From the NCBI GenBank assembly GCA_021613535.1, contig CP075493.1:14508001-14572000 (forward strand): a stretch of 64,000 bases of DNA, given 5' to 3'. This document shows positions 2,213 to 52,039 of this stretch, in pieces. Both the position numbers and the translations under genes were made by a program. The stretch comes from Adineta vaga (Eukaryota; Animalia; Rotifera). Positions within the stretch are counted from its first letter, which is position 1, and every line of letters starts with the position of its first letter. The notes under the pieces are model-generated. The model did no database searches. It was not told where the DNA came from and saw only the letters and a program-made list of their open reading frames with translations.

Positions 2213-2666
2213 TCATAGAAATTTGTTATTATTTACTTTTTAACATAAACTCGATTAATTGACAAAAATTTTGATTTTTTTTAACAATCTATTAGAATAC
2301 ATATTTTATTTAAAATAAATCTAAAGTTTAAACACTTACTTTGTCTTTGTAGCAGAGGTACTTCGTATCTACACACTTTTTTAACGTATACTACTGCTTC
2401 ATCGTTTTTCATCTATGAAGAATATATTTTTTGAAATTATGTAATAATATACTGATGAGTAATATATTAAGATCGATGGGCGTGTAACGCAAAACACGTC
2501 ATATCGACAACTTCCTTCTCTTTTAACGTGAAGAAAAAACCAATGCGTTTAAGTAATTACGATGAAATTAGTTATGATGGTAAATTTACCATATTATAAA
2601 ATGATATAAATACAGATATCTCTTCTTGGTTTTTCTTCAATTGTTTCAATAATATACAATAAAACG

Positions 2667-3617
2667 ATGATGTGGAATCATTACCGGATGAATATAAATC
2701 CAAATTATGTTGGTGCAAGAGATCAATATCAATATCACAGACGACTTTTCTCCTTTCCAGTACAACCATTGCCATCCAGAGTTGATCTACGCCGATTTAT
2801 GACGGATGTTGAAGATCAACGAAAGATGAATACATGGTAAATATTGTTATAACCAAAAAATAGTTAGTATTGATTTATCATATTGTTTCAGTTGTGCAAA
2901 TGCATTTGTCGGTATATATGAATATCTAATAAAACGGACGACAGGTTATTATATTGATGTATCTCGTTTATTTATTAATTTTAATGGTCAAATAAGAACA
3001 CAATATGGACGTCTAATTACAGATTTAGGTGTTAATCAAAGAGATATTGCATTAGGTATAAGAGAATATGGAGTTTGTAAAGAAACAAGTTGGCCATATA
3101 AAGAGAATTTTTTGAATGTGATGCCATCTCGTAATGCATATGAAGAAGCAAACCGTTATACAGTTATTTTACTTCGTGTTCCAATTGATATTCTTGCTAT
3201 TGAAATATGTTTACAAAATGGTGTACCAGTTCCTATCGATATTATATTAGATGACGATACATCAAATAATATCATAATGAATAATGGTTACTTAGTGATA
3301 CGTCAACTTAATGATCAATCGATTAATAGACGTGCTTTTCATACTGTTGTTATTGTTGGTTATGATCGACAAACACGACATTTTATCGTACGAAACTCTT
3401 GGGGATCGAACTGGGTAAGTGAAATCGTTTTATATCGAATTATATTTCTATAAACTCACAATTTTAGGGTGATCGAGGTTATTTCTACATGCCATATGAT
3501 TTTATATATAGTCGTCTTCGTGTCAATTATAAATATGCTCTATGGACTATTGTAGAAATTATACCGCGCGGAACAAAATTACCCAGCGTACTTCAGTTAG
3601 TTGTACCTGAGTCTTGA
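2667..3617 (+). CDS. Papain-family (C1A) cysteine protease, bacterial/xylellain-like type, with introns
   Basis: Reads LPSRVDLRRFMTDVEDQRKMNTCCANAF (catalytic Cys across intron 2837-2891), SRLFI, GVCKETSWPY, FHTVVIVGYD and RNSWGSNW|GDRGYFYMPY (intron 3415-3467). The start may be further upstream, at ATG 2562. Confidence 0.85.
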
Positions 3618-5354
3618 CGAATGCTTACACACTTTTTCTTTTCAATGTATGTACCTAATAAACATATTCCAACGAATTATTTTTCTAATAGTCAAAATTA
3701 AATACGTGTATTTTATACCACTTCTCACAATATGAACGAATTATTCAGAACAAAAAAGTGAATATTTCACATAAATAATTGAGCTGTCATTAAAATGAAA
3801 AAAAGAAGTAGACTAGATATTCACTCGATTTGTAACAAATAGCTTTGCATTATTACTTTCTTCTCATGAATGCCGACATACCACATTAAATACCTTTCAT
3901 TTCCTATACAAGTCATAACTTATCGATCAGTAACCATCTGAACTACAGATCGTTTTCCGTAAAAACGTTTTTTAATAATATAAATGCTAGAATATCGTTA
4001 ATTTTATAATTAACAAAGCGGAACTTTTTATCATTCTTTTGTCGTTATCAATATAGTTTCCGGGGGAAAACAAAACTTGGCTACTATGCATAAGTCAATA
4101 ACTAATTCTGAACTATCATTTAAATTAGTGAAAAAAAGGCAACTGTACAATGCGGTCAAAACAAATTCTATAGATCATAATGATAAAGATGTTTGATAAA
4201 AACGAAGATCGTTCATCTGATGCTATTTATTATTCAACTGAATTAATTGATATTTAATACATTCTAACGCATTCACAAATATGTTCAATATACTAATTGA
4301 ATTAAACATCTTCTTCTTAGTAATAATCCTAAATTTCAATGCATCTTACTATCCAAAAATTAATCTTTGAAAATAGTATTTGTTTCGCGAAATTTTGAAG
4401 AACGTTTTGATATTTATAAATATCGAAAAGAATAATTTTTCTCAGCATATGACATGAATTATTTTCAAACTTAGTTTTTCTACTCAAGGTTTGATAAACT
4501 CATCTTTTTGAATTGAAATATAATAGGTAATTCGAGAAAGAAAATCAAAGATAGCTTGCAAAGAAACTATTTTTTCATTATAGGATCAAATATGAAAATC
4601 CGTACTTAAACAGACTGGAGAAAAAGAATCATAGAGAAACAAACAATATGATTGGTGATTGAATTATTGAATGTTCTTAATTGAAAATCATTATGCAAAG
4701 GCAACGCTTATCCACTCGGAGCGGTTAACATCAGCGTTCCACTCCAAAAATATCTGTTTTTTATTAATGTCGGCATGAATCCTATGGATAAATATAGAAT
4801 TTTTTGTGAACTTGAACATAAACCTACACGAATGTTTCATTAATATAATAGGGAATGTTACCGGGAGCAGCTAGTCGTTCGTCAGCACCTCTATGTGGCG
4901 CCAATACACAGATTTACAAGAGAGAAAAGCAAGACTTCTTTACTTCAAAAACTGTTTCATGTATAAGTAAAGTACGCAGAAACACACTATCATAGAAGTC
5001 TATGGATTTCCTAAATTTTTTGACGTTTGATCCTGACACAAACATACAAACTATTTTTCTTTCATATGACTCTCCTAACATACTCAAGGGGAATTAAAGT
5101 TTATTTGCTTTTGTGTAATATTATAAATATTGTATAGATATATTCTTAGTTAACATGAGAAAAAAGTAAGGATAACATAACACAACCTTTTGAAAGTACT
5201 GATCATTAAAAATTGATGAAGTTTTTTACTTTAAAAACAATTCCGTTATGTCATAGTTTTAGATAAAATATAAGTAAAGTTGGCATCACATTCGAGTAAT
5301 TATTGTTTGAAATCATTTAACAATAATAAAATATTGATTTGAATTGTATCCTAA

Positions 5355-45126: not shown

Positions 45127-46329
45127 ATAAATGTCTTGTGAATATACAATACAGTACATGAAATTTTGAATTAAATAGTCTTTTATCTAAATATGACATT
45201 TAATAAACGATAATGAAAGATTTCATTACAGATTGCTAACAAAGTAATTAATTTGAAGAGAATAGAATTCTAATATCAAAGTCAATTGATTTAAAAAATA
45301 ACGATGTTGTTGAATTAAATTTAATTAACATAGGAGATTATAGAGAAAAGAGTCTTAAATCTAAGCTTGATATGATCTTGAGAACAGTCCTAATTAGAAA
45401 AGATTTACTTCGTGATATAATATACGGTTTACATTTCAAAAGCATAGTTTGTATAGATCTCTTCATTTTTAACCTAACTTGTTTTTTTCAATTTGATAGA
45501 ATTTTTCACCTGTGAATAAAAGGAGTATTTAAAATAATGGAAGCTTTTCATTAATGGGTATACGAAAAATCAAACTGATTGAAATTATAAGAAATTCGTT
45601 TGCAAGACACTGCTAAGTTCTGCTATAACTAATATATTATATATGATACATGTGTATTACAGAAGTTTCCTATTTCATTCTTTTAGTCTTATCAAATAGT
45701 TGTAATAGTTTTAAGGCAAACCAACTATAATATAATCGAAGTAGATTAAGATGACTTACATCGCTGAATATTTGTATATACTATGCAAGATATGAACTCT
45801 AAAAATATATTTAATTGAATATAGTTTGTTACTTTTTACTCCACGAGTTAGATCGACAATTTATTCTAAATAAATAAATCGCTTTTCCAAGGCATATATT
45901 CTGTTTCATTTACTAGCTTTCTTATCAACTGTTTTTTTTAACAATTCAGTGTTCATCATATGTCGATTTTCATTTCTATATCTGAAATTATATTGTTTTG
46001 GTATTGCAATTTATTAATTGTCAGATCAAAGGTATGAACAAAGACAATGATATTTTATATTATATCATATATTCATTCTATCTTTTGGATGTAGGTAAGA
46101 GCAAGAGTTTGAGTGAGAATAAAGTTAATATTGCTTTTTCTATTGATATCAAATTAGAAAATAACAAGGAATGTTAACCAGTATGCAAGAAGATAAAAGA
46201 AAAGAAGAATGTCAATTATATAACGCAGATCAATTGAAAATTCTCTTTTATTACGATGAGCAGCTAATGAAAGAGTATCGACAACATTCTTCATAAAGAA
46301 GATACAAAACTTTTATCAAAACAAATCAT

Positions 46330-46408
46330 TTGAGGGTGTGGGTGTAGGCAAGAGTACGAATGTACCGAAAAGATCACCCACACTCTCACCCATCTACACA
46401 CTCCCAAG
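46330..46408. repeat. Mini inverted-repeat element with telomere-like arms
   Basis: TTGAGGGTGTGGGTGTAGG ... CACCCACACTCTCACCCATCTACACACTCCCAAG. Confidence 0.6.
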
Positions 46409-46489
46409 ATTTCCATGAAGCTTTTTTAATTGGTTGAAATGAGTCAACCGATGGAAATATTTTGTCAATGGAAATATGCCAAATTGATT

Positions 46490-47060
46490 AGTAATCAGCG
46501 CATTTCTCAGTAAAATATTGTTCAAAATTGAAAAATAACGTGTGGAATCGATAGTGTTCGTGGATTTTGAGCGGAAAGAAGGTAAGAATGGGACTGATTA
46601 TGGGTGAAATCGGTCCAGAGGCGACTCCGTGCAGGAAAAACTGTATTTTTTTGTGTTTTGGGTGGTTTTGTGCGTGAAGAGAGGTACGTAGGAGATCGAA
46701 CATGGTTGGTATCGATAGAGCTCATCGAGCTCGATCTGGGACCAGTGAGACCGTACTTAGGATCCATTCAGATTTTTCTAAAATTTGGGTGTTTTTCGAT
46801 GTTTTTTCGCAGTTTTTTTAGTTTTCTTAGAGGTAAGGGGCGGTTACTTTCGGAAATATTTTTTTGAGAATCCATAGAGCTCGTCGAGTTCTACTTGGAT
46901 CCAGTATGAACAGAGTTGGAACGCATACTCGTGCGAATCTGGCCTGGCCAAGGTCGAATCCGGAGCTAAGATATCCTACGTACCACGAGAAATTATTAAA
47001 AATAATAAGACCATCAACGTTTTTTCTAGAGAATTCGACAAGAAAGCCTTTGATGAAAAC
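46490..47060. mobile_element. GC-elevated non-autonomous DNA-transposon-like remnant
   Basis: Internal repeated TAGAGCTCxTCGAGxTC...GGAxCCAGT motifs at about 46716 and 46875, and a composition shift. Termini not identified. Confidence 0.35.
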
Positions 47061-47505
47061 TGTTTTGTTTATGGCAAACAATAGATGAAGAATACTGAAA
47101 AGTAAAGATCATATGAAGGCTCGCTAAGTTGTGAAACAATGATCAATTTCAGAGGCGAGTTATATTTGAAAACATATTTCAGTGGTATTACTTAGAACGT
47201 CATTCAAATCAACTACGCCAATGCAAAATGAGAAGCAGCTGCCTTATTCCCACTCCATCGACCTACGCAAAGTACCTATAAATCAAGTACTTGAATACGG
47301 CAATGTAATAGTCACAAACAGAAGTTTCTCGCGTACTTTCTTTCTCTTACATAGGTTTATTTTTAATTGATTTTCTCCATTGACTATATTTGTAACTTAA
47401 TCTCCCAAGTACAGAAGAATATGTAATGATATGAAAACAACAACACATGATACTAGCCAAATCCCAACAGGTGGCGTCTTAACTCCTTTTTTCTCTAACA
47501 TGGAG

Positions 47506-47514
47506 TATAAAAGC
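47506..47514 (+). promoter_or_regulatory. TATA box of the repeat polyprotein gene
   Basis: GTATAAAAG about 60 nt upstream of ATG 47568; AATAAA at 49731 downstream of the stop. Confidence 0.55.
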
Positions 47515-47567
47515 AATCGGAAAATTCAATATTCTCTAATAAACCAACATCGAAAACATCATTCAAT

Positions 47568-49659
47568 ATGCATCTAGCAATTGCGTGCACATTTCTTCTC
47601 GCTACTATTGCTTTCGTCCAAAGCAAACCCATCTTGAATAACGGAAACCGTATCAATACAATTCTTCGTCATGTTGCTTCAAAAAACGTAAAATATCCTT
47701 TAATATTGAAAACAAATTTTACATTATCTTACTTTCAGAACTTGGCAAATCAACTCAGTGGTCGTTCTGCTCGCTCAATTCGCAGTCTTATCCATCAACA
47801 ACGAGAATTTGATGATTTTGCCGACCTTATTATTCAAACTCCACAACTCGCAGTAAATTGACAATTTCAATTGTATTTTGTAAGATTTAATTATATATTT
47901 ATATAGACTGTACTTGCTGAGAATTCTGAACTTGCTCTCAATATTTATGCTATTCTTTCTGAACCACAATTAAACTCAATTGAAGAATCCATTCTTAACC
48001 TCGCCAACAGTGTCTTAAGTGGGCAGCTTGATGTTAATACAGCTGTAACCCAATTCTTGGGAGAACTCCAACAGTTCATTGGCTCAGATTCTCAACTTTT
48101 CGATGCTATCACAAACGCTGCTCTGCAAGCGCTTAATGGTCGTCGTGCTCGTTCAATTCGCAGTGCTATCCGTAAACAACGAAAATTTGATGATCTTGTG
48201 GACCTTATTCTTGAAACTCCACAGCTCGGTGTAAATTGACAATTTGAATTGTATTTCGTAAGATTTATTCATATATTTTGATAGGTTGTATTTGCTGAGA
48301 ATGCTGATCTTCTTAACGATGTTTTGAATGCTCTTTCTGATCCAGAATTGAGCACAGTTGCAGAATCTGCTCTTGACCTCGCAAACAGTGTCTTAAGTGG
48401 GGAGCTTGATGTTAATACAGCTGTAACCCAATTCTTGGGAGAACTCCAACAGTTCATTGGCTCAAATTCTCAACTTTTCGATGCTGTCACAAACGCTGCT
48501 CTACAAGCGCTTAATGGTCGTCGTGCTCGTTCAATTCGCAGTGCTATCCGTAAACAATCAACACATGATACTATTGAGACCGTTATTACTGAGAATCCAC
48601 AACTTGCGGTAAATTGATGAATTCATTTATTTTTCAAAAATTTATTTGTATATTTATATAGCTTGTACTCGCTCAGAATGCTGAACTTATTGAAAAACTT
48701 CTGGAATCTCTTTCTCTTTCACAATTCGAGGTCCTTGACACACTCGGTGTCAGTCTCGCCAACAGTGTAATAAGTGGGGAGCTTGATGTTAATACAGCTG
48801 TAACCCAATTCTTGGGAGAACTCCAACAGTTCATTGGCTCAGATTCGCAACTTTTCGATGCTGTCACAAACGCTGCTCTACAAGCGCTTAATGGTCGTCG
48901 TGCTCGTTCAATTCGCAGTGCTATCCGTAAACAATCAACACATGATACTATTTTCACCGTTATTACTGAGAATCCACAACTTGCGGTAAATTGATGAATT
49001 CATTTATTTTTCAAAAATTTATTTGTATATTTATATAGCTTGTACTCGCTCAGAATGCTGAACTTGTTGAAAAAGTTCTGGAATCTCTTACTATTTCACA
49101 ATTCGACGTACTTGACACACTAGGTGCCAGTCTCGCCAACAGTGTAATAAGTGGGGAGCTTGATGTTAATACAGCTGTAACCCAATTCTTGGGAGAACTC
49201 CAACAGTTCATTGGCTCAAATTCTCAACTTTTCGATGCTATCACAAACGCTGCTCTGCACGCGCTTAATGGTCGTCGTGCTCGTTCAATTCGCAGTGCTA
49301 TCCGTAAACAACGAAAATTTGATGATCTTGTGGACCTTATTCTTGAAACTCCACAGCTCGGTGTAAATTGACAATTTGAATTGTATTTTGTAAGATTTAT
49401 TCATATATTTTGATAGGTTGTATTTGCTGAGAATGCTGATCTTCTTAACGATGTTTTGAATGCTCTTTCTGATCCAGAATTGAGCACAGTTGCAGAATCT
49501 GCTCTTGACCTCGCAAACAGTGTCTTAAGTGGAGAGCTTGATGTTAATACAGCTGTAACCCAATTCTTGGGAGAACTCCAACAGTTCATTGGCTCAAATT
49601 CTCAACTTTTCGGTGCTGTCACCAACGCTGTTCAGCAGGTGTTTGGACGTGTGCAATGA
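47568..49659 (+). CDS. Secreted tandem-repeat polyprotein (590 aa; five ~108-aa acidic amphipathic helical units separated by G-R-R/S-A-R-S-I-R sites), 7 exons
   Basis: Exons 47568-47687, 47739-47852, 47907-48230, 48285-48608, 48662-48985, 49039-49362, 49417-49659, all with phase-0 GT-AG introns. Signal peptide MHLAIACTFLLATIAFVQS; 377-378-bp genomic period. Confidence 0.9.
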
Positions 49660-50287
49660 TTTTGATAATTAGGAGAGATCAAAAAAGAGTGATTGAAATT
49701 ACTTTTTTTTGTGAATTTTAATTGCATGGAAATAAAGTTTATTGCGTCTTATACAATCGTTAATATCCCGCGATGAGATGCATATTCTCCAGGAAATTCT
49801 CTTTGTTTCCAAGCTATAGTGTATATATATCTGTCGATTGAAAACAATTAAAAAGTGGATTCTCATACGTGATAAAGGAACACCAACGCTTTAGAACATC
49901 AAAAAGAGTAACCGTTTTCAACAAAGGTAATATAATACGACTTTTTAACGACTTAGCGACGGAAAAGTATCCAGATTGTATAGAAGATAAATCATCTCGT
50001 CAGAACCATGCAGCCGCTGATAAACGCATTTTGGTTTTGCAGCTACTGACACCCGATGCGAAACTGGTGCCGGAATGTTCAATATCGTGGAATAGGATGA
50101 TTGCTCTGCTGATGATTCTTCTACAATTGAACCAGATGATACCGAAGAAATCTACGTAGTTGGTAATTGGTCTTGATTAAATCAAACTATATGTGAAGTT
50201 GTACAGTTTGCTAATATTCACCAGTTTTCAGCTGTCGAACAAAAATATCGTTTGATCAAAGACAAGATGCACTAAAGAATAATAATA

Positions 50288-51149
50288 TTAGGTTGGCAAG
50301 AAAGTTCTTGCGGTTTTTTTGAAAATTTTTTAAAACATTCCAGAAGTTTCCATACTAAGAGTATATAAAGGGAGTATGAATATCTTTCAAATCATAATAA
50401 AACCATCAATATGGATGCTGATCACGGATTGAAAATGAATCTTTCTCGTAGAAAGATTCGAGCGCTTTTGCTTCATGAATTCCGTCTAGATCACAAAGCA
50501 ACGGAAGCAGCCAACAATATATGCAGCACGACTGGTGAGGATGTACTCTGCTTCCGTACGGCACAACATTGGTTCAATAGTTTTAAGAACGTTGACTTAG
50601 AACTCGACGATTTAACTCACTCTGGTAGACCACTGGAAAGGGATGTGGATCTCTTGAAGCAACTTATCTAACAAGATCCTCGGCTGACTTCACGGTGCTT
50701 AGCAGAGCAGCGTGGGTGCTCTTATTGGTAGAAAAACATTTGGGAGAATTAGGCAAAATATCGAGTTCGGATGCTCCATGAGTTATCACCACATCAGCTT
50801 CAAAGCCTACCTGCGAAAAATTATTAAAACTTAGATGGATTATCGTTTTTCATCCACCTTATTCTTCTGACTTGGCTCCAACAGACTACCATTTGTTTCG
50901 TGCTCTTTCTCATCACTTGCGTGAGAAAACGTTCGACGACGAGAACGATGTGAAAATGGATATTGCCAACTTCTTTGATCAAAAGTTCCAGGATTTCTAC
51001 GAACGTGGAACCCTATCTCTGACAGAACGTTGGCGACAAGTCATAGATAGTGATGATGTTTATATAACTGAAAGCTAATTGTAGTATTTAAATGAAAAAG
51101 TAAAAATAAAATTTTTGATAAAAACGTAAAAACTTTGTTGCCAACCTAA
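50288..51149 (+). mobile_element. Mariner (Tc1/mariner) DNA transposon, internally deleted, defective transposase
   Basis: TA|TTAGGTTGGCAAGAAAGTT ... AACTTTGTTGCCAACCTAA|TA. Has the HTH region (IRALLLHEF...ATEAANNIC...HSGRP), WMLHEL and HPPYSSDLAPTDYHLF; the catalytic core is missing. Confidence 0.95.
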
Positions 51150-51151
51150 TA

Positions 51152-51790
51152 CAACGAAAATACCGATTGGTGAATTGAAAATGAATGTTTTTTAAGTGAA
51201 ACATGTGAAAAGTGAAGATGGGAATGTATAAAACAACTTGCTTCAAATCATTATTGAATTGCATGGACTATAAGTACTTGACAAATTCGAAACCGAATTT
51301 TATTCCAACTTTAACAACTTTTCATTCAAAAGGTCGTGCTATATTTTTATTTGCTGATAATACGCCATATGTATGTCATGTCAGTGAATTTCTCAAATCA
51401 AAGTTTGGAATCACTGTTGAAGGAGATTATTATGGTCATAATAAAATGACCTATGAAAAAAATGGTCATCAACAAAAAGAGCACTTTGGTCGACATGAAA
51501 TATTTACTAGAATTAAAAATCTATTTGAAGTTAGTACTATTATATCTCATCCTGTATATTCAATAGCAGAAAGTCGTAAGCTATGTATTCCTATTGCAAC
51601 AGCTAATGATGTTAATCCATATATTGTTGTTTATGATCCACCCTCGTTATTAAGATCGAGAGAAGGACGACTATGTTTAGATTGTGAATTCATAAAATTA
51701 TATTATAACTGAATTCAGCAGGAACAGCTCGATATATTGTAAATACAAGTTGTTGGCTTTTCCGAATTGAAAATCGTTTTACGTCGTATA
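51152..51790 (+). pseudogene. 5'-truncated, frameshifted paralog of the 17976-18953 gene
   Basis: VKHVKSED-ECIKQLASN...GRAIFLFADNTPYVCH...HEIFTRIKNLFE...EGRLCLDC...AGTARYIVNTSCW, with stops and frameshifts. Confidence 0.85.
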
Positions 51791-52039
51791 GAATCACTTA
51801 TTTTTCATTCTATAAATATGAATAAGCGCTTCTCTTATACACGTATTCTCTTTGAAAAATGTATGACAGACAAATGAACTTTTTTCAACATAGCATTGTC
51901 TATTGTTATTGTATGGACGACAAAGAACAATATTTGGAAAAATCAATAGAATTAAATACAATCATCTATATGATGACCGACTTTTTCTAATTTTTGAAAA
52001 AGATTCCTGCAGGAATAGTTGTGACCGATGTCTTCCCCA

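Follow-up and report, generated by a model that had tools for sequence, protein, structure and literature searches.

Analysis of a 64,000-nt stretch of Adineta vaga DNA (contig CP075493.1 of assembly GCA_021613535.1, positions 14,508,001 to 14,572,000, forward strand; hereafter the window, with position 1 as its first letter) showed a spliced gene at 47568-49659 that encodes a protein of 590 amino acids (aa) with a predicted signal peptide, a basic pro-piece and five similar units joined by basic linkers. The gene probably encodes a convertase-processed, tandemly repetitive polyprotein of an Adineta-restricted family, yielding five acidic helical-bundle proteins of ~11 kDa, a reading to which we assign a probability of about 0.55.

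According to the proposed scheme, the signal peptide would bring the 590-aa precursor into the endoplasmic reticulum, and a furin/kexin-type proprotein convertase would cut the exposed linkers at RSAR/RRAR in the late secretory pathway, with an overlapping RSIR three residues on as a possible additional cut site. The products would be a basic pro-piece of 33 aa and five Cys-free, acidic bundles of 6-7 helices (~11 kDa, two sequence types), so that one transcript would supply a small extracellular helical protein in five copies. Our best guess, by analogy with the nematode polyprotein allergens (NPAs), is that the released units may carry or coat hydrophobic ligands or surfaces.

Gene model and anatomy of the protein

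The gene model was obtained by reading positions 47200-50000 and locating GTAAA donors. All features lie on the plus strand of the window and are as follows:

47506-47513, plus strand: TATA-box-like element TATAAAAG, 55-62 nt upstream of the ATG
47568-49659, plus strand: gene, seven exons and six introns, 590 aa
47568-47687, plus strand: exon 1, 40 codons, signal peptide and first part of the basic pro-piece
47568-47624, plus strand: signal peptide codons 1-19, ending ..AFVQS, by inspection
47739-47852, plus strand: exon 2, 38 codons, end of the pro-piece, GRSAR (47760-47774) and N-terminal segment of unit 1
47907-48230, plus strand: exon 3, 108 codons, core of unit 1, GRRAR (48138-48152) and N-terminal segment of unit 2
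48285-48608, plus strand: exon 4, 108 codons, core of unit 2, GRRAR (48516-48530) and N-terminal segment of unit 3
48662-48985, plus strand: exon 5, 108 codons, core of unit 3, GRRAR (48893-48907) and N-terminal segment of unit 4
49039-49362, plus strand: exon 6, 108 codons, core of unit 4, GRRAR (49270-49284) and N-terminal segment of unit 5
49417-49659, plus strand: exon 7, 80 codons and TGA, core of unit 5, ending ..VFGRVQ
49731-49736, plus strand: poly(A) signal AATAAA, 72 nt past the stop codon

The TATA box and the poly(A) signal, both already named in an earlier reading made from the letters of the stretch (the sequence-only reading), were read directly. All six introns were of the GTAAA..AG type, in phase 0, 51-54 nt long and 13-20% GC. 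The exons were searched singly, and the 590-aa chain used here is the database protein P0001 rather than a joined translation. A scripted comparison showed that the exon-by-exon translations are consecutive pieces of P0001 (590 aa), which is UJR17902.1, "hypothetical protein I4U23_004801 [Adineta vaga]". This identity bears out both the spliced gene with signal peptide, pro-piece and five units that had been proposed and its attribution to a rotifer. The gene is genuine and publicly annotated, yet uncharacterised. The mechanical list of open reading frames (ORFs) gave only fragments of it because an in-frame stop opens each intron; the earlier statement that the gene had been missed holds for that list but not for the public annotation, where it is present as UJR17902.1. 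A pseudogene or an ORF artefact was rejected, since the phase-0 introns are clean, the family is conserved and a public gene model exists. A public contig search found no contig encoding P0001.

Residues 1-19 were predicted to form a signal peptide ending ..AFVQS (M-H, a 15-residue hydrophobic stretch, V-Q-S, then K-P), assigned by inspection with the cleavage position taken from the -3/-1 rule. The family members P0002, P0003, P0005, P0008 and P0025 share this N-terminus, with IAFVQS and then K/N-P. The next 33 residues (20-52) make up a basic pro-piece (pI 12) that ends in GRSAR, and residues 53-590 comprise five units of 106-108 aa (11.4-11.9 kDa), units 1-4 measuring 103 aa when GRRAR is excluded. 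The ~108-aa repeat described earlier was therefore found, whereas the size of 85-90 aa foreseen for the products was too small, units 1-4 being 103 aa long even without GRRAR. The units had a pI of 4.1-4.9, no Cys, no Trp and a grand average of hydropathy of about +0.1, and their cores (75-77 aa) carried 0-1 Lys/Arg each, in agreement with the earlier picture of Cys-free, acidic units whose basic residues lie in the linkers.

An R-x-x-R convertase motif was located at every unit boundary (RSAR at residue 52 and RRAR at residues 160, 268, 376 and 484), within GRSAR at residues 48-52 and GRRAR at 156-160, 264-268, 372-376 and 480-484. Each GR(S/R)AR was directly followed by SIRS(L/A)I(H/R)(Q/K)Q, with SIRSAIRKQ after each GRRAR, so that the pattern previously given for the start of each unit was recovered at five sites in P0001. 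Both RRAR and the overlapping RSIR are minimal R-x-x-R motifs, and units 2 and 5 additionally contained RKQR.

Linker motifs across the family

Relatives of the protein, whose distribution is given below, carried the following linkers between their units:

P0001 (gene under study): GRRAR-SIR
P0004: GKRR-ATVGR
P0006: GRTR-SVR (contains RSVR)
P0007: L-RKRR-ATVAG
P0009: GKR-SAAVAR
P0010: SKR-VAGR and SRR-VASR
P0012 and P0019: GQR-SAPVAR
P0015: GKR-ASNGHR

Members that are only 20-45% identical thus have, at one and the same place in the linker, a first basic site with a second Arg 3-6 residues on. Linkers with GAR, and linkers of the GLTRP/GLARP type that have no convertase motif, were also seen among the members. 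In a set of 18 family proteins, linkers had a Lys/Arg density of 0.075 and cores one of 0.018, with 28 versus 2 dibasic pairs and 12 versus 0 RxxR motifs, respectively, counts that overstate the sample size, as repeats inside one protein are non-independent.

The ends of two relatives were also informative. In P0007, the last unit also ends in RKRR and is followed by an 11-aa stub. In P0012, the signal peptide runs straight into ..ATVAR / ANINDL, so that on removal of the pro-piece the first unit would share its N-terminus with the internal units; the 33-aa pro-piece of the gene under study ends in an Arg site in the same way as the short pro-piece of P0012. Both the stub and the pro-piece fit with true processing and would be compatible with it, judged from these sequences.

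Predicted structure of the units

A single unit, modelled in AlphaFold2 with a 40-row alignment of family units (A3), was predicted as a bundle of 6-7 helices with a mean predicted local distance difference test score (pLDDT) of 88.4 and a predicted template modelling score (pTM) of 0.77, and uncertainty was confined to the first ~10 basic residues. A two-unit model was built with a 27-row alignment of unit pairs (A5) and was judged by its pLDDT, pTM and helix order. In this model, pLDDT fell below 50 at construct residues 1-9 and 105-118 (the latter being RRARSIRSAIRKQS), helix order was identical in both halves, and no confident packing between the units was predicted (pTM 0.46, disordered linker). 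Because pLDDT was below 50 over the basic linker and pTM was 0.46, the units look like independently folding beads in the models, joined by an exposed basic linker. The minimal furin-type site that had been claimed for every unit boundary was present there and lay within this low-confidence stretch.

Family members and distribution

An exhaustive HMMER search with an exon profile against 1.84 billion representatives returned 23 proteins at E<=0.001. True homologs had E values of 5e-79 to 1e-9 and came only from Adineta vaga, A. ricciae, A. steineri and ~1-kb environmental contigs of the Joint Genome Institute (JGI); no other rotifer genus or animal was among the matches of this search. Bacterial poly-HAMP chemoreceptors (P0020-P0022, E 1e-4 to 6e-4) were rejected as chance or compositional matches, with an hhalign probability of 9.5%. 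Word-indexed homolog searches added only P0034 (Adineta ricciae), P0035 (unnamed) and the JGI contig P0033. All relatives were annotated merely as hypothetical or unnamed, or carried obviously wrong automatic names in the case of JGI. The members have the signal peptide (..IAFVQS K/N P) and the unit in common, and unit number ranges from 1 to 5. This is a small protein family so far known only from the bdelloid genus Adineta and environmental transcripts.

A profile search of the A. vaga assembly (100.8 Mb, six contigs) showed loci on contigs 1 (two), 2 and 4, and a weak one on contig 6. Besides the gene under study, these were:

L013 (G000:C2:530500-537000), about 2290-4363, minus strand: gene of UJR24434.1 (P0002), a paralog of 588 aa with five units, on contig 2 at ~0.533 Mb
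L014 (G000:C1:16609000-16616000), about 3211-4000, plus strand: gene of UJR18504.1 (P0006), the closest A. vaga paralog, 202 aa with one unit, 2 Mb downstream on contig 1
L015 (G000:C4:15118000-15125000), about 3903-4446, minus strand: contig-4 family gene with the family signal peptide and one unit
L019 (G000:C6:11413000-11422999), about 2700-5150, minus strand: further tandem gene of secreted type

The cores of UJR24434.1 are Gln-rich, and two of its units have an extra helix (ADLLNLANQF..). In UJR18504.1, GRTRSVR separates the full unit from a truncated one that precedes it. L019 has a 388-nt period repeated 5 times with 93% matches, and its units end in a hydrophobic tail and ..ALSIFGKR-EAVDAR-VNLNDI... 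It matched the family profile weakly (E 2.4e-5; hhalign 21%), and showed 44% identity to P0012 over 48 residues spanning the linker and the first helix (E 6e-9). The two-Arg linker logic is present in this further, distant A. vaga gene.

Three JGI contigs, L016, L017 and L018 (samples 3300057186, 3300010874 and 3300056994, respectively), were intron-less, ~1 kb long and encoded 2-3 units with RKRR/GKR linkers. Their automatic names (oligoendopeptidase F, oligoribonuclease and phosphate uptake regulator) are plainly wrong. L016 and L017 each open with a few bases of 5' leader, contain the complete ORF and close with an A/T-rich 3' stretch that includes AATAAA, and they look like environmental transcripts. 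Being mRNA-like, they point indirectly to expression of such genes as mRNAs with several units. Literature on bdelloid secreted repeat proteins, rotifer polyproteins, the Adineta secretome and pedal-gland adhesive proteins yielded nothing on the family.

The sequence-only reading had described many C-ending codons; third-position C in the gene under study was indeed raised (19%, versus 4-5% in two neighbouring ORFs) but was not dominant. Because of this raised C-ending codon use, and because relatives were assembled from environmental transcript data, the product is a candidate abundant secreted protein in rotifers.

Organisation of the repeat array

Tandem Repeats Finder showed a single array at 47759-49637 with a period of 377 nt, 5.0 copies and 84% matches. 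As one intron lies inside each repeat, the array grew by genomic duplication. In the linker-to-linker register, DNA identity was 96.8% between units 2 and 5 and 95.8% between units 3 and 4, and the two unit sequence types were ~76-79% identical to each other. The type of N-terminal segment (RKFDDLVDLILETPQLG or STHDTI..ITENPQLA) was always paired with the same downstream core type. This co-variation fits a functional unit border at the basic site and not at the exon border.

Identity was distributed in blocks along the array. Over the second core half and the adjoining GRRAR-SIRS, nucleotide identity was 91-100% in all repeats, while for the remainder, introns included, it was 53-82%. The conserved blocks of ~120-150 nt are at the following positions of the window:

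48020-48160
48400-48540
48775-48915
49150-49290

This blockwise identity is suggestive of gene conversion on a local scale or of mosaic duplication within the array.

Searches for known families and folds

Kinship of the units with the insect allergen repeat (MA, as in Bla g 1), the NPAs or saposins had been suggested earlier, and a motif had been said to recall the MA repeat. Neither suggestion was supported by the Pfam and PDB profile searches, and the kinship was likewise unsupported by AlphaFold and Foldseek analysis of one unit. Against Pfam, the exons (E<=10) gave no family over its cut-off and no insect allergen repeat, NPA or saposin model. With 40 family units (E<=1), again none was over its cut-off, and MA, NPA and saposin were absent among the best 25 of 66 families. 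Matches were limited to sub-threshold helical noise, namely TPR_TNPO3_IPO13_3rd (22 bits, cut-off 27), 7TMR-HDED and FIVAR, and the MA-like motif was statistically undetectable.

The PDB sequence profile search (E<=10) gave a designed helical repeat protein (E 6e-4) as its only match, and neither the ABA-1 chain nor MA/Bla g 1 was matched at that threshold. Foldseek against the PDB showed nothing at E<=0.001 and no MA, NPA/ABA-1 or saposin fold among the top matches; its top rows were nematode FAR lipid-binding proteins, which were not significant (E 0.7-1.5, template modelling score 0.34). In the ESM Atlas, the shape search reached scores of at most 0.56 with unrelated families, and the feature search gave no usable match. 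On the model, the unit is an unclassified small predicted helical bundle. As a compact, confidently predicted domain without detectable relative, it could define a new domain family.

Probable processing of the precursor and alternative readings

Several results weigh against release of the units by a convertase. The linkers of the five-unit paralog P0002 (GLARP, GLTRP and SRSNTRV) have no RxxR, no dibasic pair and Pro after Arg, and A. ricciae P0003, P0005 and P0011 have the linker GLTRP, without convertase motif; chains that a convertase could not cut therefore exist, and the domain can do without release of units. As a furin motif, RRAR is no more than minimal, P2 not being basic, and none of the boundary motifs has K/R at P2. 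The four identical RRAR sites count as one observation because of homogenisation or recent duplication. No fold or sequence tie to a known ligand-binding family was found in Pfam, PDB, Foldseek or the ESM Atlas, and the bdelloid and rotifer literature searched held no proteomic data on the family. The secreted chain may accordingly stay intact, as ~61-kDa beads on a string forming a multivalent extracellular component (mucus, adhesive, matrix or surface coat) whose basic linkers bind electrostatically. Such a component is possible, though on the unlikely side. P0002 with its five units and the A. ricciae proteins are multi-unit chains without cut sites, concerted evolution explains the identical RRAR linkers, and the alternation of charge is real, with cores at a pI of about 4 and Arg-rich linkers. 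However, multibasic motifs, including full RKRR and GKRR, stand at the same position in distant members, P0007 has its post-site stub beyond the last unit, both P0012 and the gene under study have, behind the signal peptide, a pro-piece that closes with the same Arg site, and the site coincides with the sole disordered stretch of the two-unit model. Several convertase genes with P domains are encoded in the A. vaga genome, in which about nine places were above the cut-off for that domain (P_proprotein, PF01483).

Gly precedes the basic residues in the gene and in the GKR/GKRR/GQR linkers of relatives, and copper monooxygenase (PHM-type family) loci occur in the genome, where the best match to Cu2_monooxygen (PF01082) was 143 bits. 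Both would suit a precursor of neuropeptide or host-defence type that gives short or amidated products from G-R-R / G-K-R sites, with the helical domains as spacers. The presence of Cu2_monooxygen is permissive only, since the family also covers dopamine-beta-hydroxylase-type enzymes. Such a precursor is very improbable, as the conserved and confidently folded part is the ~95-aa helical domain, the segments between two Arg sites are just 3-6 residues long and variable, Gly is missing from the L-RKRR and Q-SKR/SRR linkers, and the units are acidic, not cationic. Amidation of the units themselves, which had been proposed from the Gly before the basic residues, is improbable too. Carboxypeptidase E/D trims basic residues only and stops at Ala. 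Trimming after a cut at RRAR would therefore halt at Ala, leaving ..GRRA with Gly unexposed, and Gly would become C-terminal only by a cut after GRR. The Gly is thus correctly noted, but its use is doubtful, the residue also being unconserved in the L-RKRR/Q-SKR relatives.

Within the preferred reading of a cleaved polyprotein, a more specific version is tentative and rather doubtful. It supposes an independently evolved polyprotein specific to rotifers whose ~11-kDa units, with a helical-bundle fold without solved relative, would be abundant extracellular carriers of hydrophobic ligands, a functional analogue of the NPAs that arose separately in bdelloids, and whose paralogs would have gained, changed or lost their sites. 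The family linkers, from RKRR to RRAR to none, are natural variants for studying the evolution of cleavage sites in repeat arrays.

Genomic surroundings

The neighbours of the gene were a GPCR-like (G-protein-coupled receptor) ORF, a glycosyltransferase-like ORF and an NHL-repeat ORF, which are unrelated to the polyprotein gene and uninformative about it. G+C content was 34-38% over 46001-52000 (gene and flanks) and ~25-31% across most of the window.

Comparison with known polyprotein systems

NPA units are ~130 aa long, with a fold of seven helices in which two four-helix bundles have a long central helix in common, and according to descriptions NPAs occur in nematodes only. Polyproteins built of tandem repeats that are themselves folded proteins, rather than short peptides, have been called rare, filaggrins and the nematode NPAs being the textbook cases (PMC3079579). 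In the NPAs, tandem helix-rich units are cut at regularly spaced K/R-x-K/R-R sites, and ABA-1A is a lipid-binding unit of seven helices (PMC3079579). The rotifer protein resembles them in having a signal peptide followed by tandem similar units with regularly spaced basic, furin-like sites, in its small units, predicted to be helix-rich (6-7 helices in the model, seven in ABA-1A), and in more than one unit sequence type per array. It differs in that its units have no detectable sequence similarity to NPAs in the Pfam and PDB searches, the unit is ~106 aa long, and the site is R-R-A-R rather than K/R-x-K/R-R. Tandemly repetitive polyproteins are reported to have few or no introns in the repeat region (PMC3079579), whereas every rotifer repeat contains an intron.

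The MA/Bla g 1 proteins are likewise secreted and built of tandem helical repeats of ~100 aa, and Bla g 1 binds lipids (PMC8286345). The rotifer units, in contrast, had no Pfam, PDB-sequence or fold match to them; a Bla g 1 repeat pair forms one 12-helix capsule, while the model of the rotifer pair shows no confident mutual packing (pTM 0.46).

Profilaggrin is an intracellular protein of keratinocytes, and its sequence, cell biology and unit type are unrelated to those of the rotifer protein. What profilaggrin and other furin-processed repeat polyproteins share with it are many unit copies per translation product and basic linker sites (PMC3079579). The resemblance to the NPAs is one of analogy and not of membership. 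If the proposed processing is true, the gene would be a third, independent example of the tandem polyprotein design with folded units, in bdelloid rotifers.

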